A stretch of DNA of 62,944 bases, filler included, from Parasitella parasitica NRRL 2501 (lineage: Eukaryota; Fungi; Mucoromycota), in NCBI GenBank assembly GCA_025201805.1. It is 11 parts of 11 records of this genome, joined end to end, with 100 filler letters (N's around TTAATTAATTAA, not from the genome) between each part and the next. Parts side by side here need not be neighbours in the genome. Positions count along the whole stretch, not along the records: positions 6,448 to 8,031 come from MU619333.1; 10 more parts are not named here. One strand, written 5' to 3'. The first letter of the stretch is position 1. Each line of letters begins with the position of its first letter. A program made the position numbers and the translations under genes. Below are positions 3,810 to 19,650 of the stretch, piece by piece. The notes under the pieces are model-generated. The model was not told the DNA's origin. It searched no databases and saw nothing but the letters and a program-made list of their open reading frames with translations.

Positions 3810-3853
3810 NNNNNNNNNNNNNNNNNNNNNNNNNNNNNNNNNNNNNNNNNNNN

Positions 3854-4442
3854 CATTCAATCTTGGAATAGCAAAATAAATATATTCAGTTCTAATTGTA
3901 TTTTTCTGGCTATATTTTGTTATTCTAAACAGGTGTATCTTTATACTTATTTTTCAGAGCTTCATCTAGTAGAAAAATTTTGGATAGTAGCCAAAAGCAA
4001 AGTGAAACATCATAAGGTTTTGCAAGAAGATACTTTATCAAAAAGAATGATGAAAGCCTGCAGCAGCGTGAAAAAAGATCTCTTAAGTGTTGGGATATAT
4101 ATCGAAACAGAGAATCCATGTAATGGTCAGAAGCAACAAGAGTTAACAGCGTTGCTATAAAATTGAGGTACTGTAAGTAGCAATTATGCATTTTTTAAGA
4201 GTTTTTAAGAGGAGCAAAAAATAAAAAAAAAGCTATAACATTATGTTATAGCAAATGGGAGTATTGATTGGTCAAGAAATAGCTATAACATTGTGTTATA
4301 GCAGAGGACACTTTTGATTGGCTAGTTAATACCTGTTCAAATTGAAATTTTAAAAACTATAACATATTGTTATAGTTGTGTGTGTTTTCGTATATTTCCG
4401 TGTTATACTGCTGTTATAGCTAAACATTTTATGGCAGACCGC
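3854..4442 (+). repeat. Left arm of a 589-bp inverted repeat
   Basis: Reverse complement of 5759-6347 (identical ORF translations in both arms); contains an LTR end (3854-3930), a Tc1 transposase remnant and repeated GCTATAACA motifs. Confidence 0.95.
3933..4160 (+). pseudogene. IS630/Tc1-like DDE transposase C-terminal remnant (mirror copy 6041-6268, minus strand)
   Basis: FSELHLVEKFWIVAKSKVK resembles the YSPELNPIExFWxxxKxxVK motif. Confidence 0.7.
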
Positions 4443-6347: not shown

Positions 6348-6743
6348 NNNNNNNNNNNNNNNNNNNNNNNNNNNNNNNNNNNNNNNNNNNNTTAATTAAT
6401 TAANNNNNNNNNNNNNNNNNNNNNNNNNNNNNNNNNNNNNNNNNNNNAACGGGAGGCATTTTAATTACTATTTTTGGAAAAAAGTGAAGTTTCTTTGAAG
6501 GTAAATGCAGTGAAAGTTTATAAACAAAACAAATTCGAATCATTTAAAAAATATCTGTGTATGCAATAAACTTTGTACGCATAGAGCGTAATTGTAAAAA
6601 ATCAAACCCTCATCCATTCAAAAATCTTCATTTAGCATCGGCCCAACTGGGCTGAATCGGCCCAAATGGGCTGACCTAATCTATACTTGTTAATAAAAAA
6701 AGACTTTTGTCCTAATTAATAGTATACGTCTACTTATCCGTAT

Positions 6744-8010
6744 CTATTTACCCCTTTGTTTTAAAGCTGGGCGACAATTAAACAGCTTAAGATCTTCAGG
6801 ATTGTTTAGCAACTGGGCACTGTCGAAATACTTGAATTGATTTTCATAAAAAAATTGATCAATAAATACTTTTTGTAGGCTTGAGTTGTTTCTGGATACA
6901 AAATGTTTGTAAGTTCATTACTATTTTAGAATTTACGCTCTTTGTTACCTTAATAATTGCTTGAGATCTGCACAGTTAGTGGTGAAGCCAGCATAATCAA
7001 TTGATATAACGCATATTTTTGGATTGTTGTTTAAAAATTTCAGAAAATCTACTGTGCTTCCATGAGTGTTGTTCAATTGTGACAAGATATGGTTTACATC
7101 TTTCAAATCGCGCTTTAAAAATATTTGCTTCGCTGTACTAAGGGGAGAAACAAAGACCTTATCCACTAATGATCTTTTGTACAATACATCTATCATCCTT
7201 TGTAAGCAAAGGACTCTGTTTTCTGTATTTCCAAAGGATTTTCTACAATAACCAATTACTTGATATCCTTCTTTCTTCATTTCATTTATTATCTGTTGGT
7301 GTTTTGGCAATACTTCGACAATATCTTTTATCACAGAATCTATAACAACAGCCAGTAAGTTGCTGTGTTCTTAATCGCCAACTTCAAACTTACCGTAATA
7401 TTTGTTGTCTAAGACATACAATTGTCTGCTTCGAAGTTTTATCTCTTTTTCTTTAACCTTTATGCTTTTTCGTTCAGGCTCAGTTGAGATTAAATCAACT
7501 TTCTGCGAATTCAACCATTGGCTAAACCCCAGAGGAGTCTTTTTGTCGAATATATGACTATATTTCCAAATGATTGATAAGATATCCTTATCATATACAG
7601 AAAGCAGTTGGTAGCGAGGGTCAGAGAAGCATTCCTCTTTTGGTCTAAAAATATAATTGATAAAATCAACGACTTGACTTCCATTTTCTACATTGTACAT
7701 TTAATTAGAAGTTAATGAATTTTTGAAATTGCTTTCTAGCCTCACATTTACCAAGTATGATATCTTTCTCATTATTTGTATTTTTGCTGGGTATAACTTC
7801 AGTTAATTCTTCTTTAGTTTTGTACAATTTGTAAAAAGCTGGCGCGCCAAATACACGATGGTTGCAAACGAGCATGGGTTCATATGGATTGTTAACGTAG
7901 CAGAGAGTAACATCGGGTGATGTCTCCACATTGAGAAGACAAACTTTAACATTTTCCTCATTGTATTGTTTACAGTAAAATATGCAACTGGCTTCTTCTT
8001 TAGAAATCAT
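6744..8010 (-). CDS. Four-exon gene (363 aa) with a C-terminal serine-recombinase/resolvase-like domain
   Basis: Exons 8010-7752, 7687-7394, 7339-6949 and 6891-6744 join in frame through three GT-AG introns; VIGYCRKS resembles the resolvase GY-x-R-x-S catalytic motif. Confidence 0.65.
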
Positions 8011-8132
8011 TTTTAGTAATGAAAGAGACCANNNNNNNNNNNNNNNNNNNNNNNNNNNNNNNNNNNNNNNNNNNNTTAATTAATTAANNNNNNNNNNNNN
8101 NNNNNNNNNNNNNNNNNNNNNNNNNNNNNNNA

Positions 8133-8455
8133 CCATGAGAGGCAAAAGATCTGGACCTACAAAGACTATCATAAAAGCTCTTCAAAAATGTAAAGAAAAT
8201 CGTGGTGTTACAGTCCAAATGGTAGACGAATACCTCTCCAGTCAAGTCTGCAACAACTGCAAAAAAAGAAATGTTGAAAACGTTGTGCAACGATCAGCAA
8301 AGCGAAGAGTATTACAGTGTCAAGAAACCGCTTGTAATATTATTTGGAATCGCGATATAATGGTTGCAAAAAACATCCTCAACATATTTTTACATGAAGC
8401 AAGAAACAATGACGCTCGTCTTTCACCATTCCAGCGTTCTGAATCAAAAGAATAA
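8133..8455 (+). CDS. Fanzor/TnpB-like nuclease, C-terminal part (5' end lost in gap)
   Basis: VDEYLSSQVCNNC (RuvC-II Glu plus first Cys pair), LQCQETAC (second Cys pair), WNRDIMVAKNI (RuvC-III Asp). Confidence 0.88.
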
Positions 8456-8620
8456 TTGCAAGCATTGTGTGTCATTGACATTACTCTTTGATACGCCATG
8501 GGTATTCGGTTTATCCTATACACCATTAAAGGTGAGTAAAATTGTCCAAAGAAAAAAAAAAGAAAGTATTACCCTCTCACCCATTTTCTTTTAAAATTAG
8601 CTCCTCCGTTGGAGATGCTC
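8440..8620 (+). ncRNA. Candidate Fanzor omega-RNA scaffold region
   Basis: Lies between the Fanzor 3' end and a transposon terminus; local pairing potential (TGTCA-T-TGACA 8470-8480; GGTGAG 8531-8536 with CTCACC 8576-8581). Positional inference. Confidence 0.45.
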
Positions 8621-8623
8621 TTA
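8608..8623. mobile_element. PIF/Harbinger (Tourist-like) terminal inverted repeat with TTA target site
   Basis: GTTGGAGATGCTC|TTA is the reverse complement of TAA|GAGCATCTCCAAC, a Tourist/PIF-type terminus; the partner end is not visible. Confidence 0.6.
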
Positions 8624-8974
8624 GTTACAATAACGAGTGTGTACTACGTCTTTGAGAATTGTGCGCTTGGTTACCATGATCTAAATAGTATAGAAATATT
8701 AGCGAAAGTTTTATTTGGTTTGATTGTTGGAATCAAACAATACTTGGTTTAGACTGACGGCATAATTAGAGGAAATGGACTAATGAATTATACATGTATA
8801 AGAAAGAAAATGGGATAGTTGAAGATAGTAATTTTTTTTAAGGAAATGGAGGTGTTTTGATAGATAAAACAAGTTAAACCATACAATGATGGTCAAGTAT
8901 ATAAATGAATGAGAGAAAATCGAAGAAGAAGAAAGGGTATATTTACATTGAAAGGACCTACAGTTTCTTTAGAT

Positions 8975-10589
8975 TTAACAACTATAAATCTTTTGAATAC
9001 CGAAAATTTCTGTCCTGCAAATGGCACACTCAGTCAGCTTTTGTGCACAGAGTTGGCAATAAGCTAGATAGAAAAAAAAATTAGCGCAAGTTTGGCTGAC
9101 AAATACTTGGTAAATACATACCATAGTGATAGCAGGGTAATAAGCAGTATTCAATGTTTCTGGTGAAGCACAGGCGACATTTATTTAGCTCATCATCTTT
9201 ACCAGACTTTGTCTTTTCTTCCACCATGACAAGAACTTCTTCCTTTAATTTCTCATTATCATTCATTAAATGTACAACATCCAATTCGATCTTGGAGAGT
9301 CTCTCTTGACAGTTGATTCTTAATATATTTTGTTCGTTGTGTTCATTTTTGTTGCGGTGCAGTTCTGTTTGGAGGTCAGCTGTCTTGACCTTTAGTCTAT
9401 CAGCTTTGGATGCCAAGCTGTCAAACTTTGTTGTAAGCGAATCGATGGCGCTCTTGAGTTGTGAATTTTCGTTCGTTAGTTTGTCCATTTCAAATTTGAG
9501 GGAAAAAAATTGTTGATTTTTCTCTATATTAAGAGCTGAGGTGGTGTTGGGGTTTACGGTAGGATCTGAGCTCATGACAGGTGATGTGACATTGGAACAA
9601 GACGATGCTGAGGATGATCTTGAAAGTACAGGCATAGAAGTGGGTCTCTTGGCCATAACGCAGGTTGGGATGATAAGAGGTTTGCTTCCTGTTGGTTTCA
9701 GTAACTGCACATCTGTTTCTGAAATAGTATCCAAGCTATTGCTGTTGTTGGAATGCAATGTCGCCAAAAGGTCAGCTTGATGCCCTTCTGCGGGAGGAGC
9801 AAGATGGTTTCCAGGGGAACGAGTAGGTGGTTGCTGAGGAGATGCTATTTTTTCTGTGAGAGTTTTGTGCTTTTTAACCATGTATTCCTCATGGCTAATA
9901 CAATTGTGAATGTGAAAGTTTGGTCTAGGAAACGCAACTTGATGAGCAGGCAAAACCCAGCTACATTTTTTTGCGCCGTCAACATCGCCATTCTTGCATG
10001 CAAAGATGATTGCACTGTTTGCTCTACTGATACGCATAGTTACGGGGCTGTGGCAAAAACATTTTGGCAGGACAATTGGTGGATTCAATTCAAATTTGTT
10101 AGAGATGCGGAAGATGGCGCAGAAAGTAAAATTATACAAAGGACAGCTACGAAGCTCGACATAATCCAAACTGACAAGGTTTGTGGCTTTAAGAGTATCA
10201 CAAAACTTTGTCCAGGATATTTCGTGCACATGAAACCCGCAGACATATTTGCTTTGAGTCTTATGTAGGGTTGTTGCAGGGTCTAACTCAAAATTACTGC
10301 AGACAAGGACAGGACCGTACTCACTAGTATAGGTTCTAAAAGCCTTTTTTCCACAAAAGCATTGAACAGGCATTGGGAGAATAACATCGAGCTGTTCTTT
10401 TGAGGGACTGATAAGGCGAGTGTTTGCATTGAGGTTTGTGTTTGGTGGTGGTGTGAAGGATGGTTTCGTAGGTGCTGCGGTAGGCGATGAAGTGACAGGA
10501 GAAGAAGGCGCTCTCCTGTTCAACGGACGTTGTTTTCGGTTTTCCTGGGCTTCTTCTTGAATCCAATTCAGCCATCTATTGTTGGACAT
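8975..10589 (-). CDS. C3HC4 RING-finger protein with N-terminal GRF-like zinc fingers and a coiled coil
   Basis: Exon 10589-9122, intron 9121-9064; exon 2 completes CRLC...PCYHYAYCQLC...CAIC; CFCG and CFCH zinc motifs upstream. Confidence 0.85.
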
Positions 10590-12239: not shown

Positions 12240-12842
12240 GATAAGAGAAAAAAAGTTGAAAAGAAAAAGAAAGAGAGAAAGAAAAGTACAACAGGAACAG
12301 CCAGATTATTACATATCACTAGAATAGGGGACAAGTACAAATAAAGGGGCACTGAGAAGGAGGGGCAGAAACTCAAAAAAAAAAAAAAAAAAAAGTCCTA
12401 GGAGACTCATGGTGTTGTATGTAACTGTATATGTTGTTTGATGCTGTCTCAAAAGGAGCCTCTCATAGGTATCTACATGATGAGTGTATTTGTGTGTGTA
12501 TATATCGATTGCTCATGTTGAATAGCTGGAGGCTGTTGATTTCATGACACCACATTCCTTGAAAACACCCACAAAGAAAAAAAAGGATATGCCCGAATAT
12601 GTGTAGTACCTTTTTTTTTCATGCACACGATGTTTATATGTCCATCAACAGCACATTTTGCCATAAACATGTCGCATTACATGCATAATCCTTAATTTTA
12701 TGTGTATATCAATGCATTCAAATTGGAATAAAAAGTGGATATATTTACATATATGATATAAGATTTATAGTTAAGGATATAAGAAAGGAATCTGTGTCGA
12801 TTCACCATCTAACAAGGGAGACGGTAGTAAAAAAGAGGAGGC

Positions 12843-14268
12843 CTATGAGTGCTGTTGACTGATGATAGCATGATAATTTTCTGAATTCCTCTTTAAAATC
12901 TCATGGACAGAGCCTAACAGTCTCGTAAAGGCCTTTTTGCTTAGCGTAGCGCACTTTAATCTTCCTTTTGCGAATACTGTAGCTGCTCTTGGACTATCGT
13001 TTAGTAGGGCAAGTTCTGTGGTGTCGATTAATTATAATTAGTGAGTTTGCTTTGTAAATATACAACCGGAATCTACCTCCGAAGTAAGCTCCTCTTTCAA
13101 ACTGATTCACCTCTTGCTGGTCCCCATTCTTGTCCACTTTGTAAAACACAGCGACGCCAGATTCGATTAGATAGAATTGATCCCCTACATCGCCTTGCAA
13201 GATAACGTGATCACCGTCGTTGAAGTAAACTGACTCCAAGGCATCCGCAATTTTATGACGCTCATAGGATTCCAACGATTTGAACAGAGGCACCTCCTCC
13301 AAAAACGATTCGTACATTTTGCGTTTGCGAGAAGTATTTTCCATCAAAATAGTTCTGAATGTGACACGATCAAGTGCCCACAAAACAGCATTCGAAGTAG
13401 CTACAATAGTTGCAGCTCTTGGTGCATTGTACATAAGAGCTAGTTCTCCAAAGCTCCCTCCTGGTTCATAGGTTGCGACCAGTTTCTGCGCTGTTGCTTC
13501 AGAGCCATCTTGTTTTGTCGAAATGAAGCAATCAAATGTGCCTGATTCAACTACAAAGAAAAAGTCACCCACTGCGCCCTGTTCAATAATGGCTGTTCCT
13601 TCAGTCACAGTTGTTTCCACCATGGCATCAACTACATCCTGATGGTGTTCTTCATCGAGGTTCTTGAAAAGAAAGTTGTTACCTACACTCTTTTTGATAC
13701 CTTCTATCTGAGAGGATGTTTTGGAAATTACTTTCTTGACAAATCCTTGGGACGATGGTGCCATCGATTCAGCACTGACTGAAGTGCGTCGACCTCGATT
13801 GTAATTGGCAGCAGCAGGGATGCTACTGAGGGGTGTTGTGGAGAAATTGTCTTGCTCCTCATCTTCGGTAAGTAGAATATCATCATCGTCGTCATAGTGA
13901 TGATTGCTACTGTCACTACTGTAGCTGCTACAAGTAGTTGGAAACATACTATGACAACCATTCTCGGCCAAAGGATGATCAGTTTCTATTACCAGCAAAA
14001 TGTTGATGGGTGTCATTCTTTGTCATCTTGCTGATGGTCGCTTACCTATAACATGATGCTCACAAAGATAGCTAGCTCTCTGCTCTTCCAATTTTTGGTT
14101 AAAGAAATTAGCACAATACTGCAGTGGATCTTGAGGCTGATCTTTACTGTACGCTTCATGTAGCTCCGTCAATAGTTGAGTGTATTCATCGGCATACGAA
14201 AAGTCGAATTGCTCTAATTGCTGCTGCTGCTGCTCCTGTAGAGGCAGTTCACCGAATAAAAATGTCAT
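12843..14268 (-). CDS. pkaR: cAMP-dependent protein kinase regulatory subunit (3 exons)
   Basis: N-terminal docking domain, RRTSVSAES inhibitory site and two cNMP domains ([30 protein letters not shown] after splicing). Confidence 0.96.
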
Positions 14269-16494
14269 TTTTTGAGAAATGTGTTTATTTAATATGAAAT
14301 AATCTGTTGTTGATGAGCAATAGAAAGCTGCCTATCTGTGTGAGAAAGAGAGAAGAAAGAAAGAGAGGAAAATAGGAGAGAGGAAAAAGAAGGAAGAAAA
14401 AATATCCTTTTTCTTTTTTTTTTTGCTATTTTATACACACACACACACAGATAGACGCAGGATACGCACACGTATAAATTATAACATTAAATTAAATTTA
14501 ATACAGTATTTTAATTTAAAATGAGCTGTCTATACCTCCCGAGTTATAGTAAAAAAAGGTCGACCTTCACTTTGCTACAGCGAATTTTTCGACATTAAAT
14601 CTGATGTTCGGTGCGCATTTGGCGCATGCAGCGGAACACAATGCTAACAATAGAGTTTTATTGGATAGACATTACAATCTATTGAATGGTACTAATATTT
14701 AACATATAATTATATTTACCAAAGGTTAGGGATTTTTTTAAAGACAATGTTGTGAATATATTTGCCTTTTTGATATCCTATTTCTGAAACTTCAGAAGGA
14801 ATCATCAATTTTATAGAAGATAGAGGTGCGAACCCAAGAAAAACAATTGGAATTAACTTTCAATTGAAGGTCACGAGGCAAAGAGCCATTTTCTGTTGCA
14901 TTTAGACGACAAGCTAATGCTTGATGATTTTCATCCTAACGTTTAATCAAGGCTGATAGAGGAGACCTATTGCCCTGGGTTATCCAGAAGTAATTAATTG
15001 ATGAAACTTACTTCTTTATCTTTGGTTGTTAAAATGGTTTACCAAAGGAATAAGACGGATCAGTACCATTGCTTGCGCAATGGAAATAGACGTATAAATT
15101 TAGTAAATTACCACCGGTAATCAGAATTTCTGAAGGAATTGGAGATAATAATTGGTTGTAGGTATATTCTCTTATCAGAAACTAAGTAAAAACTTTGAAA
15201 TCAGTAGTTTTTATTAAGGTCTTCACTAAATATGCATCATTTGTCTCAAATAATTCAGCTTGATTCTTTGGGTTCAGGAAGAGAGCTCAGACTTAGTGCC
15301 ATGCTGCACATCCTTGGATGAGCTGTGCGGTAGACCTTCGATAACAAGTTGACACTACCGCCTCTGAAACAATAGTAATTACAATCTGTCCTGACCAACT
15401 TCAGAACTGAATTGAAAACAGAAGTGCTTTGCTACCAGGTTGAAAGATGCGCCACGAACACCATTATATACCATAGCTGACCTTTCCATTTGATAACAGA
15501 AAATTAGGATCACCAATATTCAGCAATCAAGCATATAAAAAGGCTTGCATTATTTCTATATTTTGAAGTTGTTCTCTGTTTCTGTTAGTCTTGGCATCAT
15601 CAATGTTAGTAAATACGTCTCTAAATTGTTCCATGACCTTTAAGTCGCAACAGTCGTCAGCTTATTCTATGTTCTGAGATCCACCTGCTTCTCCACATGA
15701 CAGACAGAAGGCATTTGTTGCTCCTATAATTTTCTTACTGCTTTTGGCTGATTGGGTTCTCTGGCAATGTCCAAGAGGAGCATAATTTCTAAAATGAACT
15801 GATCCATACCACAATCGAAGTGAGACGTTTGTGAATGCCACTCTTCCGCAAGAACGACAGAATACAGAATATGATGCTAAATTTTGATTGTTATCAGTTA
15901 TTGCTCAATTTTTCATACCAATATTAGAGTGGTTGGCTCTAGTATGCCCTTCTTTCCCCTAGGAAGGACATCTTATGGCGAGTCCTATTGGTGTTGAAGA
16001 CTTGGTTGTAATGGAATGGATTCCAATATCTGAAAGTTAAGAGTCAGAGCTATAATCTTTCTACAACAACTATTCACACTTTAATCCAAGATTGAATGTA
16101 GATTTCATTAACAACATTTTTAAAGAAATCAAACCTTATATTTATAATGCTAAATTATGAAAATCTACAAACAGTAAAAAAATAAACTTCTGTGTGATGC
16201 ATATTTTAAATATTTCGATGATACAACCAAAAAAAGGTTTCTTGTTTTGATAAATTCACAGCTTTCAATTGTACCCGAACAGTGAGTTTAGATGGCTTAT
16301 TATTGGTATAAATACAAAGAATGTTATATTTGCTCTCTAAAAGGATGTTCAAAAATTATTATTTCAATAGATGTAACGCCAAATACAAAAAATAATAGAC
16401 CAACAACGTACTCTCAGGTTGTGTAATTTATTATAAGAAATCAATCGTTCAATTGTGTAATCAAATAACAAGTCTTAACTTGTATTATCATCTG

Positions 16495-17130
16495 TGATTT
16501 ATCAGAAAAGTTCATAGAAATTAATCAGGTAAAGATCTGTTTATTATATTCAAAATAGAGGGTTTATGTACTTTTTATGAACTGAGGGAAGTGATGATGA
16601 AATCTGGGAGATAAAATAGATGTATCTATCCCAAATCTCATGCCATATTTTATTATGATCTGATGTTTTACACTTCATATATATTATATTCACATCCGGT
16701 TTTAGAATTGATACGTTAATCTGAACACCTTACACCCCCATAAGCCTATTAAACAGCAACTAATTCCAAAAGGTTTGAAAGTCGAGCAAATTTCTTCATT
16801 GAGAAGGTAGTAATTTATCAGAATGAGAAATTATTCAAGTAAAACAATTGTGAATTAATTAGGTAGAGATCTCGTTTATTACATGGAAAAAATGATGGTT
16901 TATATACATTATTGAATATTAGTGGACTGATGGGAGGATAAGATATAAGTGTCAGACATGGTGTGATTTAGAGGATGTAATGTTGATAGATTGTATCTAT
17001 TATTGATTTTGAACATGTCATGTGGATGAGTTAAAAATATGCAACATAAGCTTTTGAGATATGTTCCTGGATTTTGTCAGTATTGAGTTCATTACTTGAG
17101 TTTGACTTGTGGTTGGGAAATTGACTGATA
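16495..17130. mobile_element. Degenerate LTR copies: family A (~16495-16715) and family F (~16810-17130)
   Basis: Similar to 1744-1997 and 55586-55892; termini eroded. Confidence 0.75.
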
Positions 17131-17641
17131 ACTTTTACAATTCTCCCAAGTCGAGACTTTTTTTTTTTGGGCGGTAATGCTGATTTGTCGCTATGTGTTC
17201 CTGGTTTGAGCGCGATTCTGCTGTGTGTTTAATTGTTAATACTGTTTTCTGACAACTAAATTTGATACATTTTTTTAAAAACATCCACTCTTTTCTAACT
17301 GTATTTATCATTCTCAAATGGAAGTCGATTGATTTTATGACCCGTAACTGGATAACTTTTGTTTGCGGTAGCTTTCTTCTTAAGCCCTGAAACTATGGAT
17401 TAAGTACCTAATCATTTTGATTTACTTGTGTTCATTGTATTAAAATTACCGCTACAGTACCCTGTTCTGTTTCAGGGGTTGAAAGCAGTTACACATGCAT
17501 TGAAAAAAGGTTGGCCCAATAAAAAAAAATAATTGGTCAGCTTGAAAATGGGTCGCTAAGTCATTGTTTTGAAAATGGATCATTTAATACGAAAATGGGT
17601 CACCAATAAAGAAATTTAATGCATGCTTTTTATTTTGCCTC

Positions 17642-17882
17642 TTACAATCCTTTTTCACAATTCAAGCATCTCTGCCAGAACGTCAAAGAATGCTTTATCC
17701 AATTCTCGCAGCCTTCTCTGCTGATGTAAAATGATGCATTGCGAATACGATCAGAGATTTTTTTATTCTGCCTGACAGAAGAGGGATCGTTATTTACAAC
17801 AGTCTTCAGCTTGGACCAAAACTCTTCGATTGGATTCAAAAAAGGAGAATAAGGGGGCAAAAAGAGAAGTTTATAGCCACGT
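17642..17882 (-). pseudogene. IS630/Tc1 DDE transposase C-terminus, truncated by an LTR
   Basis: LLFLPPYSPFLNPIEEFWSKLK motif. Confidence 0.92.
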
Positions 17883-18300
17883 TGATCTGCCATGATTATA
17901 GACAGGAGATCATGGCAATGTACTTCAATTGAAGATTGAGGATTGTTGTCTAATGATGTGATTTGATACGCTTGTGTAAATTGGAGAATAAAGTCTCTGT
18001 TTCAAATCAAGAAGGTTATTCATGTAATAAGTAACACAGATCTGAGCACCAGGATAAAGTTTAAGGCTCTGTCAAATCAAAGACGTGTAGCCCTTGCTGT
18101 ATAACCTCATACCGTACCCTGCTGTCAAGTAGATTGTCACTGTGAATTAGTCTTGTCAATTAGTAATCTAAATAAGTCACCATAAATTTATGTAGTTGTA
18201 AAAAGTATAAATAGCAGATGCAATTTCGATCTTAAATAAAGTATCTTTAGTTTTCGTATCTCGTTAAACTTTGGTTTTTATTATCTTTTTTGATCCAACA
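17883..18300. mobile_element. LTR family E (~420 bp)
   Basis: TG...CA termini; related copies at 51024-51442, ~49800-50082, ~42850-43930 (split), ~45790-45920, ~52935-53066 and ~55398-55469; flanks do not match, so no TSD. Confidence 0.75.
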
Positions 18301-18399: not shown

Positions 18400-19650
18400 T
18401 TGAGATACTAAGCAATGAAAATTAGGGATATGCGCAATTTGCAATGGAAACATATTTCTGAGCTTGAATTTACCACTGCGAATACAGCTTTTTATTGCAG
18501 TGAAGCACTTATTTCAATTAAGGAGCAGAGCATGAAACCCAAAAACAACCTGGTTATGTCTTTACATGAATCGATACCCAAGATGCTGTGAAATATGAAT
18601 ATAAAAGCTATTTTCATGTGACTTTATGTTTAGGTTAAAATAAATGTCACCTAATCATGACCATCACCTTTTTCCCCGCTTAAAGGCATTAGTCTACAAT
18701 CTCTGATATCTTTACAAACTAGTAAGTGATAAAGACACAACCTTCAGCCAACATCTTATTTTTTTGCGTCCTTCTACAGCATATCCAAGTTTCATGCATC
18801 ACTGACCATTTTTCAGATTTTGCTATGTTTGGACCCCAAACCTCAGATTCGATTTTCAATTTTCAACTTTGGATCAACCTTCAGGGTCATTTTTAGGTAC
18901 GGATTTGAGGTCCAAACTAAGAATCAAGGCTAATACTAGTATGACAACTGTAACTCACTACGTCTTTCGATTCTCGATATCTATCTTTGTTGTCGAGATA
19001 TTACCACAACTAGATTTTTCAGATTTTGCGGATTTTACAGTATATGTTCCTATTACAAGTACCTTATTTTGCAACTAAACCAAGTTGACATTCCTAAGTA
19101 AAGTAATAAAGCACATTTTGGTACACTTACTGGTGTTAAACATGTTGTACAAAAGCTCGAATTTGACAATCTAGAGCCAATTTTGTCTTTTTACATTAAA
19201 CTTTGTCCCCCTATTTCTCTACAAACCACTATGACAACTTGGGCTAAGTAATTACTAAAATATTTTTAAAACTTAGTTCTCTGCTAGTTGTATTAGTGTT
19301 AGATAGACATGTCAAAAAAAAATTTTTTTCAGATGTTTTTAGCAGAGGCTTCATTTACTTTCACAGTTTTCAGAGCAGTAAATGGTATTTAAAGATACAT
19401 GATATACCAATACTAAAATGGAGCTAAAAAATAGCTACCAAAAGATTTTAGTTTGGTCAGAAAATACCAATTTTTGAGCGAGAAACTCTCGAAAAACGAC
19501 ATTGATTTTTACCCTTTTGAATGGCTTCATTTTGGCCCTCTAAACATAGGACCGGAAAATGGTGGATTCATTTTGGTCGAGACAAGATTTTGAATTTTGG
19601 CAGATATAATAAAGCTACAGTTGTAAAAAAAGTATTGATTTGTAGGCATT
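18400..19650. repeat. Large non-coding dispersed repeat G2
   Basis: Close inverted copy at ~61160-62400 and a more diverged one at ~47960-49790. Confidence 0.9.

Follow-up and report, generated by a model that had tools for sequence, protein, structure and literature searches.

A minus-strand gene of the fungus Parasitella parasitica NRRL 2501, found at positions 6744-8010 of the stretch of DNA analysed here (62,944 nucleotides made of 11 joined parts of assembly GCA_025201805.1, hereafter the window, along which all positions are counted), is transcribed and spliced, and the C-terminal half of its product is predicted to adopt the catalytic fold of serine recombinases. This assignment is the clear result of our analysis and is drawn from the predicted structure of a full-length homologue. 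Genes of this family, here called A, are usually paired tail to tail with a small partner, B, and we consider it an even call whether the A-B module is a selfish, horizontally spreading element with A as its site-specific recombinase.

In prokaryotes, serine recombinases are responsible for resolution, inversion, phage integration and IS607 transposition; they are also major tools of genome engineering. Among eukaryotes the known examples are confined to IS607-like genes of Acanthamoeba and giant viruses (PMC3627910). Our full-text literature searches retrieved no paper linking serine recombinases to Mucorales or early-diverging fungi, and no description of such a family was found in the searchable literature.

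Predicted fold and active-site motifs

The fold was modelled on P0016, a natural full-length homologue of 356 residues from Halteromyces radiatus that stands in for the window protein. The AlphaFold (AF2) model, built from a 34-row alignment that included the four window exon translations, reached a predicted local distance difference test score (pLDDT) of 89.1 and a predicted template modelling score (pTM) of 0.74. In an exhaustive structural comparison with one representative per PDB sequence cluster (48,161 chains), ranks 1-14 were all serine-recombinase catalytic domains, with Z scores of 10.0-7.3 over 90-144 aligned residues, covering model residues ~200-345, and the first unrelated alpha/beta protein followed at Z 5.7. 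The matches of the P0016 model included the following:

TP901-1 integrase, Z 10.0
gamma-delta resolvase, Z 9.9
Sin, Z 9.4
a large serine integrase, Z 9.4
Tn3 resolvase, Z 9.3
IS607-like protein 3lhk, Z 8.9
Bxb1, Z 8.1
IS1535 TnpA (6dgb), Z 7.3

Foldseek also placed Sin and TP901-1 on top with a probability of 1.00, at whole-model E-values of only ~1e-2, and a shape search of the ESM Atlas with P0016 residues 197-356 returned clusters that were 96-100% PF00239 Resolvase. The original prediction, made from the sequence alone, had read the gene as encoding a serine-recombinase-like protein; the fold and the serine bear this out, whereas no sequence-based method places the protein in Pfam Resolvase.

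The exon boundaries coincide with the domains of the protein, exon 1 encoding an N-terminal alpha/beta domain, exon 2 a winged-helix domain, and exons 3 and 4 the catalytic fold. The N-terminal domain, modelled separately with a pLDDT of 87.6, does not convincingly resemble any PDB structure (best Z 2.2; Foldseek E>1). The middle domain, comprising model residues 80-170 and corresponding to window exon 2, resembles the DNA-binding winged helices of RFX1 and RFX5 (73-76 aligned residues at Z 5.7) and, at Z 4.8, the P4 origin-binding domain, and as modelled it is probably a DNA-binding domain. Its position N-terminal to the catalytic domain (200-345) agrees with the domain order of IS607 TnpA, to which the original prediction had pointed. 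The model ends in two short helices (330-343) and a disordered basic tail, with structural alignments reaching model residues 341-356.

Model residue 200 lies opposite residue 1 of gamma-delta resolvase, and thus G204-Y205-x-R207-K208-S209 is in register with G5-Y6-A7-R8-V9-S10 of the resolvase, so that the serine singled out by the original prediction corresponds in structure to the known nucleophile. Both segments on which that prediction had drawn are encoded by the gene, VIGYCRKS at ~7259-7236 and ISIDYAGFTTN at 7007-6975, and the motifs within them map as follows:

7236..7253, minus strand: G-Y-C-R-K-S, residues 214-219; the Ser219 codon at 7238-7236 specifies the putative nucleophile, and Arg217 is the Arg8 equivalent
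6975..7001, minus strand: I-D-Y-A-G-F-T-T-N, residues 298-306; end of strand beta-3, at the position of resolvase L-D-R-L-G-R

In the window protein the second motif reads D299-Y-A-G-F303, retaining the Asp and Gly of the resolvase motif with Tyr and Phe in place of its two Arg. A greedy hhalign alignment against invertases (probability 4%, not significant) gives the same register as the structures, pairing GYxRKS with GYVRVS, VFVS with IFED and LDyAGLtT with LDRLGRSM. An arginine like Arg45 is probably also retained by the family. Conservation was counted over ~160 cluster representatives, many of them fragments, and is given here in P0016 numbering; every residue listed is retained in the window protein (its number there in brackets):

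Y205 (Y215), 155/158
R207 (R217), 153/159
K208 (K218), 147/159
S209 (S219), 146/159
R218 (R226), 133/157
R232 (R240), 148/163
S233 (S241), 150/163
S241 (S249), 152/163
R253 (R261), 161/167
D254 (D262), 162/166
G293 (G302), 106/116

The opening glycine of GYxRKS is kept in 150/157 representatives, and the threonine and asparagine of the second motif in 97/116 and 84/116, respectively.

Gene structure and expression

The part of the window that carries the gene (6448-8031, record MU619333.1) is AT-rich, at 28-37% G+C, and Rfam and tRNA scans of it gave no match. On its minus strand, four exons separated by three GT-AG introns join to 1092 nt, or 363 codons and a stop, running from an ATG at 8010-8008 to a TAG at 6746-6744 with intron phases of 1, 1 and 2 as given by frame arithmetic. 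The three open reading frames from which, with a fourth exon, the gene had originally been pieced together occupy 7705-8010, 7371-7700 and 6945-7334, and the intact spliced frame of 363 residues then proposed holds. The gene and its flank comprise these features:

8011..8031, minus strand: 5' flank, 21 nt; GGTCTCTTTCA at 8029-8019 bears a possible, weak resemblance (~11/15 positions) to GGTCCATTTCAC, an element upstream of family genes in two other genera
7752..8010, minus strand: exon 1, residues 1-86 and the first base of codon 87, from frame arithmetic and the RNA joint; N-terminal alpha/beta domain
7688..7751, minus strand: intron 1, 64 nt, GTAAAT..GTAG; removed in RNA contigs of runs X16 and X7
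7394..7687, minus strand: exon 2, residues 87-184 and one base; winged-helix-like domain, putatively DNA-binding
7340..7393, minus strand: intron 2, 54 nt, GTAAGT..ATAG; RNA joint in X16 and X7
6949..7339, minus strand: exon 3, residues 185-315; first three quarters of the predicted serine-recombinase-fold catalytic domain
6892..6948, minus strand: intron 3, 57 nt, GTAACA..CCAG; RNA joint in X16 and X7
6744..6891, minus strand: exon 4, residues 315-363 and TAG; end of the catalytic domain (its final beta strand and helices), followed by a conserved basic tail (F-N-C-R...Q-R-G-K)
6676..6751, minus strand: alternative 3' intron, 76 nt, donor AGG/GTAAAT; joint 6673/6675 to 6750/6752 in one X7 RNA contig
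6820..6869, minus strand: alternative intron in exon 4, 50 nt, frame-shifting; joint 6819 to 6870, CT..AC, in one X7 RNA contig

In Logan contigs of run X7 and of X16, an oligo-dT RNA sequencing run, the joints fall exactly at 6891 to 6949, 7339 to 7394 and 7687 to 7752, each CT..AC on the plus strand, indicating that the gene is transcribed and spliced as modelled and that all three introns are real. A contig from a third RNA library, X15, retains the introns and may represent unspliced RNA or DNA. Both alternative joints are minor and come from run X7. Read from the sequence, removal of the 76-nt intron replaces the last two codons and the stop with a 16-residue tail encoded by the 3' untranslated region, and the frame-shifting 50-nt isoform would lack the last beta strand of the catalytic domain. 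The intron positions are common to homologues of other genera, and full-length family members, 350-385 residues long, can be aligned over their whole length with the translations of all four exons. Compared with its closest relative (dS 0.17), the gene shows a ratio of nonsynonymous to synonymous substitution rates (dN/dS) of 0.42, and compared with Thamnidium one of 0.11, values which indicate that the coding sequence is under constraint.

The A-B module, its repeats and its distribution

The family is large and evolves fast. Exon 3, used in a word search, retrieved relatives from Cokeromyces, Rhizopus and Mucor along with many short Logan contigs, and a HMMER profile search of 1.84 billion cluster representatives returned 680 clusters (50% identity) at E<=1e-3, 348 of them at E<=1e-10. 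Every named member comes from the Mucorales, where the family spans ~20 genera (Mucor, Rhizopus, Cokeromyces, Thamnidium, Pilaira, Parasitella, Sporodiniella, Mycotypha, Benjaminiella, Blakeslea, Halteromyces, Hesseltinella, Cunninghamella, Gongronella, Dichotomocladium, Radiomyces, Rhizomucor, Apophysomyces and Phycomyces), and its own ESM Atlas cluster is confined to Mucoromycota. Hesseltinella vesiculosa alone holds at least 8 divergent paralogues. Identity between genera is ordinarily 40-63%, and the neighbouring genes are unrelated in all ten loci examined.

Near-identity between genera departs from this pattern. The Parasitella copy is 97% identical to one in Pilaira, 95% to one in Rhizopus stolonifer and 87% to one in M. 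mucedo, and a Phycomyces copy is 98% identical to one in R. delemar, 92% to M. mucedo and 90% to R. stolonifer; two 90%-identity clusters thus span genera of different families. The near-identical copies lie on long contigs in Pilaira (759 kb), R. stolonifer (4.8 Mb), Parasitella (279 kb) and M. mucedo (498 kb), and those of Phycomyces on contigs of 1-1.8 Mb in three assemblies. Identities of 95-98% across genera, set against the usual 40-63% and a dN/dS of ~0.4 between close relatives, are hard to explain by vertical descent. They suggest horizontal transfer, as read from sequence comparison, and form the strongest point for mobility.

The usual unit consists of A followed, tail to tail, by B, a gene whose product, of 75-80 residues, is paralogous to the N-terminal domain of A and consists of that domain alone. 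The pairing occurs in Cokeromyces (locus L002), Thamnidium (L006), locus L005, L009-L011, which are the closest relatives of the window gene at 88.6% nucleotide identity, and Hesseltinella (L007/L008 and L014). Rhizopus L003 keeps only a remnant of B, and in Halteromyces L015 B lies 7 kb from A.

Repeats flank the module in two genera. In Hesseltinella L008 a 622-bp inverted repeat of 94.7% identity (9353-9969/12705-12089) ends beside the start codons of A and B; its arms contain 12-mer arrays, and the N-terminal domains encoded just inside them are only ~35-45% identical. In Halteromyces L015 inverted repeats of up to 97% identity lie upstream of A and B (9818-9955 and 18827-19225), with the palindrome GGACC[A/T]GGTCC present in 5 copies upstream of A and at least 10 upstream of B. 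Repeats of the Hesseltinella arms include arrays of GAACCGGTTC or AACTCGGGCTTC, and two tandem arrays of ~1.4 kb stand immediately upstream of family genes at L014:11824-13204 (B1; ~64 copies of a 21-22-bp unit with the perfect palindrome GAACCGGTTC) and 14901-16269 (A2; ~121 copies of AAGAGTGGAC). Arrays of short palindromes are what a dimeric DNA-binding protein would recognise, and they could equally be shared promoter elements. A 13-mer, TTTCACTGCTTAG, is found just upstream of A in Thamnidium (L006:~3850-3865) and of B in Cokeromyces (L002:~9065-9090), and the related GGTCCATTTCAC stands upstream of A in Rhizopus (L003 7479-7490). Together with GGTCTCTTTCA of the window, these sequences may represent a shared promoter or a recombination-site core. 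A candidate universal terminal motif, GGTCCATTT, was ruled out, being present in L002 and L003 only.

The window copy stands without a recognisable B. Positions 6448-6671 lie on a contig of depth 516, ~12.5 times the gene depth (run X1), at least 4 different unique contigs branch off at 6665-6701, and 6448-~6690 is the end of a dispersed repeat with ~12.5 copies per genome. This repeat contains no open reading frame of note and has no Rfam or tRNA match; near its end are two tandem 19-bp units (6637-6655 and 6656-6674), each with the palindrome GCCCA-NN-TGGGC. Homology between the window and L009 stops at 6687. Beyond 6690 the strain of X15 matches the A-B spacer of L009 and L002 at 28/30 positions; it thus keeps the spacer, which indicates that the ancestral B of the window's strain was displaced by the end of an unrelated dispersed repeat. 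The dispersed repeat beside the gene is therefore a strain-polymorphic insertion or replacement that is absent at this site in the X15 strain. A degenerate B copy on the plus strand at 6450-6655 was considered and rejected, since tblastn with two B proteins gave no match there and the depth assigns these positions to the unrelated ~12-copy repeat. On the other side of the gene, the public contigs of two runs reach only 40 nt past 8031, a sign that a further repeat or a stretch of low complexity may have its edge ~60 nt upstream of the ATG.

Truncated or fragmentary copies occur at L001, L002 and L004. Decayed copies lie at L002:7905-8591 and L004:314-684; in Cokeromyces, A ends inside exon 2 and B is intact, and two partial tandem copies of 75% mutual identity are present in Mucor lusitanicus (L001:4119-4872 and 7957-8665). 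An 18-kb Logan contig carries an exon-3 fragment only, its second motif spoiled to DYTDFTTK.

Other repeats and genes adjoin several loci. Three fragments of a copper amine oxidase gene, duplicates of one another, surround the L014 arrays. At L008:12710-14864, and also in L007, the module's right arm borders on an open reading frame for a Tc1/mariner-type DDE transposase (13528-14475, 315 residues), on either side of which a 61-bp tandem repeat forms arrays in inverted orientation (12710-12890 and 14537-14864). Directly upstream of the Rhizopus delemar copy, at L003:6075-7461, frame-shifted pieces of open reading frame resemble the end of a DIRS/Ngaro tyrosine recombinase (PPW..I.KVL motif, H-x-L-R stretch, C-terminal W...F..FY). 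The family gene as an accessory frame of such a DIRS-like retroelement was rejected: no other locus shows this adjacency, and Pfam scores none of the pieces. L016 and L017, from one assembly of Phycomyces blakesleeanus, reflect either the recent duplication of a large segment or contig ends at which haplotypes were left uncollapsed, and L016 includes a 3.8-kb satellite at 14400-18300.

Mobility, alternative explanations and known systems

If A is the recombinase of a selfish A-B element, its winged helix would bind the repeated palindromes in both arms and bring the arms together, its serine domain would break and rejoin DNA at the arms, giving excision and insertion or inversion, and B would modulate A through their common N-terminal domain. 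A wider proposal, which we put forward tentatively, is that A-B modules constitute an unrecognised superfamily of eukaryotic mobile elements, moved by a serine recombinase that is nuclear, has introns in its gene and works with a rebuilt active site. This recombinase would act on palindromic arrays in inverted arms, and the elements would spread horizontally among Mucorales, possibly via the fusion parasitism of Parasitella. Were it true, fungi would have their first native element based on a serine recombinase, and the enzyme class would be extended to nuclear fungal genomes by a large, expressed and unannotated family. The family would in that case offer a natural experiment on dispensable active-site residues, as well as a new selfish element and horizontal-transfer marker in an order that includes human pathogens and food fungi; and if the proteins are active in eukaryotic nuclei, they and their palindromic sites would be of practical interest as recombination tools.

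The original prediction had likewise suggested that the gene may be the recombinase of a poorly described fungal mobile element, and this stands in part. The family is many-copy, sits in unrelated neighbourhoods, includes truncated copies, has its module bounded by inverted arms in two genera and shows near-identity across genera, whereas the window copy itself is single: read depth over the gene is 41, against 36-41 on neighbouring unique contigs (DNA run X1), equal to that of unique sequence. This single-copy state is among a number of observations that weigh against a mobile, DNA-cutting A. Comparison of identical copy pairs, meant to locate the ends of the element, defined neither ends nor target-site duplications, and no element termini, target duplications or empty sites were found among the loci. 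The recent duplicates examined are large blocks rather than clean insertions; as sources of element ends, the L007/L008 pair proved uninformative because the two copies have in common a 5-kb block that includes the mariner-like element and permuted flanks, and the L016/L017 pair because it is 99.8% identical over all of 14 kb, the family gene included. Most paralogues are old, at <50% identity, and three retained introns are unusual for a recently transferred element of prokaryotic type. Long inverted arms were found in two genera only, being undetectable in Thamnidium L006 and Rhizopus L003, and since they coincide with the promoters of A and B they are possibly shared regulatory arrays kept alike by gene conversion. 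The cross-genus identities are protein-level values only, and P0301, the R. delemar partner of the Phycomyces copy, lies on a 2.5-kb contig, which makes contamination possible for P0301 alone. Co-occurrence with Fanzor or DDE genes, originally put forward as a check, did not materialise, no such partner belonging to the unit; in L001-L003, L006-L008 and L014-L017 the genes called within 8-10 kb include none whose Pfam domains are of the TnpB/OrfB type.

The protein itself adds to these points. R68 and R71 of gamma-delta and Tn3 resolvases, the arginines of D-R-x-x-R, are required for catalysis in the enzymes studied in the Tn3 and Sin literature. The family consensus at this motif is D-[YF]-A-G-[LF], with both arginines hydrophobic family-wide; the caution originally attached to the window copy thus extends to the whole family, and because both arginines are replaced, catalysis is uncertain. 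No long helix E is obvious in the P0016 model. In library and PDB sequence searches run with the exons individually and with 34 family members or full-length relatives, neither any exon nor any full-length relative was recognised by Pfam, NCBIfam, PHROGs or PDB sequences, and PF00239 matched neither the exons at E<=10 nor the 34 family members at E<=0.1. The hhalign probability of the family was 1.5% against Gin and 4% against a 120-sequence invertase profile, neither of them significant, the sequences of the latter set being 72-98% identical and too uniform for a deep profile, and an Atlas language-model search with the C-terminal part gave no usable match. Matches to RE_MamI (E 0.0025) and DUF2509 in the Pfam, NCBIfam and PHROGs scans of the exons and the 34 members are at chance level, and the PDB sequence matches of the exon-3 profile and C-terminal domain, to ribosomal protein S4 and, through a resemblance repeated every time over 24 residues, to designed TIM barrels, were dismissed.

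Part of this evidence would suit a protein that descends from a recombinase and no longer cuts DNA, its fold serving as a dimerising or phosphate-binding scaffold in a DNA-binding regulator of its own module, or, in a variant, a host transcription-factor-like family or a selfish gene pair spread by something else. We regard this as rather unlikely, even though it accommodates the family-wide loss of both arginines, old paralogues, a single-copy window gene under moderate purifying selection and the lack of detected termini or target duplications, as well as arms that match the upstream regions of A and B exactly and end at the start codons like promoters, and a 13-mer, TTTCACTGCTTAG, that precedes A in one genus and B in another. 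Set against it is the 92-98% conservation, even in fragments, of the serine, the Arg8 equivalent, the adjacent lysine and the R-D pair, which exceeds the needs of a scaffold; strong conservation of the serine together with different basic residues argues that the site still does something. Identities of 95-98% across genera and families need some horizontal movement, and the scattered truncated copies resemble decayed mobile DNA. If A does prove inactive, the family would show clearly how a recombinase fold can be converted to use in DNA-binding regulators. Improbable, in our judgement, is an ordinary, immobile, lineage-specific host family whose copies arose by segmental duplication and whose cross-genus identity reflects contamination or mislabelled cultures, for example of a mycoparasite cultured together with its host. 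Parasitella does parasitise other Mucorales, one near-identical copy does sit on a short contig, the identical copies of Hesseltinella (L007/L008) and Phycomyces (L016/L017) lie in large duplicated blocks, and at L014 local segmental duplications of the amine-oxidase gene surround the modules; however, the near-identical copies are embedded in long contigs, two independent subfamilies show the pattern, and gene neighbourhoods differ in all ten loci.

That the fold match itself is convergence, a generic three-layer alpha/beta domain carrying GYxRxS by chance, strikes us as highly improbable. It would account for the failure of sequence and profile comparisons to reach significance, unmatched models often reach 7-8 in the aligner, which leaves the top Z of 10 just moderately higher, and the structure was predicted for a homologue rather than for the window protein. 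Convergence would nonetheless have to produce 14 consecutive top ranks from one family before the gap to Z 5.7, and the same family named independently by Foldseek and the Atlas. It would also have to place G, Y, R and S in register at the same point, between first strand and first helix, and bring a second stretch, L-D-x-x-G, into register with L-D-R-L-G.

Among known systems, the domain order of the family is that of IS607 TnpA, in which a DNA-binding domain precedes the serine-recombinase catalytic domain, and the catalytic domains of the IS607-like 3lhk and of IS1535 TnpA superpose on the P0016 model (scores above). The ends of IS607 carry multiple repeated TnpA-binding motifs, which the repeat arrays beside the family genes resemble. 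Unlike IS607 TnpA, with its MerR-like helix-turn-helix (HTH), the family has an RFX-like winged helix and an extra N-terminal domain, and no MerR-family chain is among the top 50 structural matches of the P0016 model. It differs further in lacking TnpB or Fanzor within 10 kb of any locus, where the partner is instead a small paralogue of the N-terminal domain, in its three spliceosomal introns, in having no equivalents of R68 and R71, and in its undetectable sequence similarity.

The small serine recombinases gamma-delta/Tn3, Sin and Hin/Gin (PF00239) match the family in catalytic fold (Z 9.3-9.9) and in the serine at the S10 equivalent; of their L-D-R-L-G-R the family retains Asp and Gly, with R68 and R71 absent. 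Just as hin lies inside an invertible segment, the family gene lies between inverted repeats in two genera. The small enzymes, however, have a C-terminal HTH, an order reversed in the family, which also shows no clear long helix E, and they use crossover sites of 26-28 bp, whereas the family's arms extend over hundreds of bp with tandem arrays, in a eukaryotic host and beside genes with introns. The best single structural match is the catalytic domain of a large serine integrase, TP901-1, and the adjacent small partner B recalls the recombination directionality factor (RDF) of this group (TP901-1, Bxb1, phiC31); the family nevertheless lacks both the recombinase/zinc-ribbon C-terminal domain and a phage context, and B copies A's own N-terminal domain, unlike any RDF. 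Within fungi, Cryptons, DIRS/Ngaro elements and Starships with their captains are also mobile DNA based on site-specific recombinases, frequently bearing inverted or split repeats and lacking classical target duplications, and the DIRS-like remnant beside Rhizopus L003 is a neighbour rather than part of the A-B unit. The enzymes of Crypton, DIRS and Starship elements belong to the tyrosine superfamily, whereas the family of the window gene is, by its predicted fold, of the serine type.

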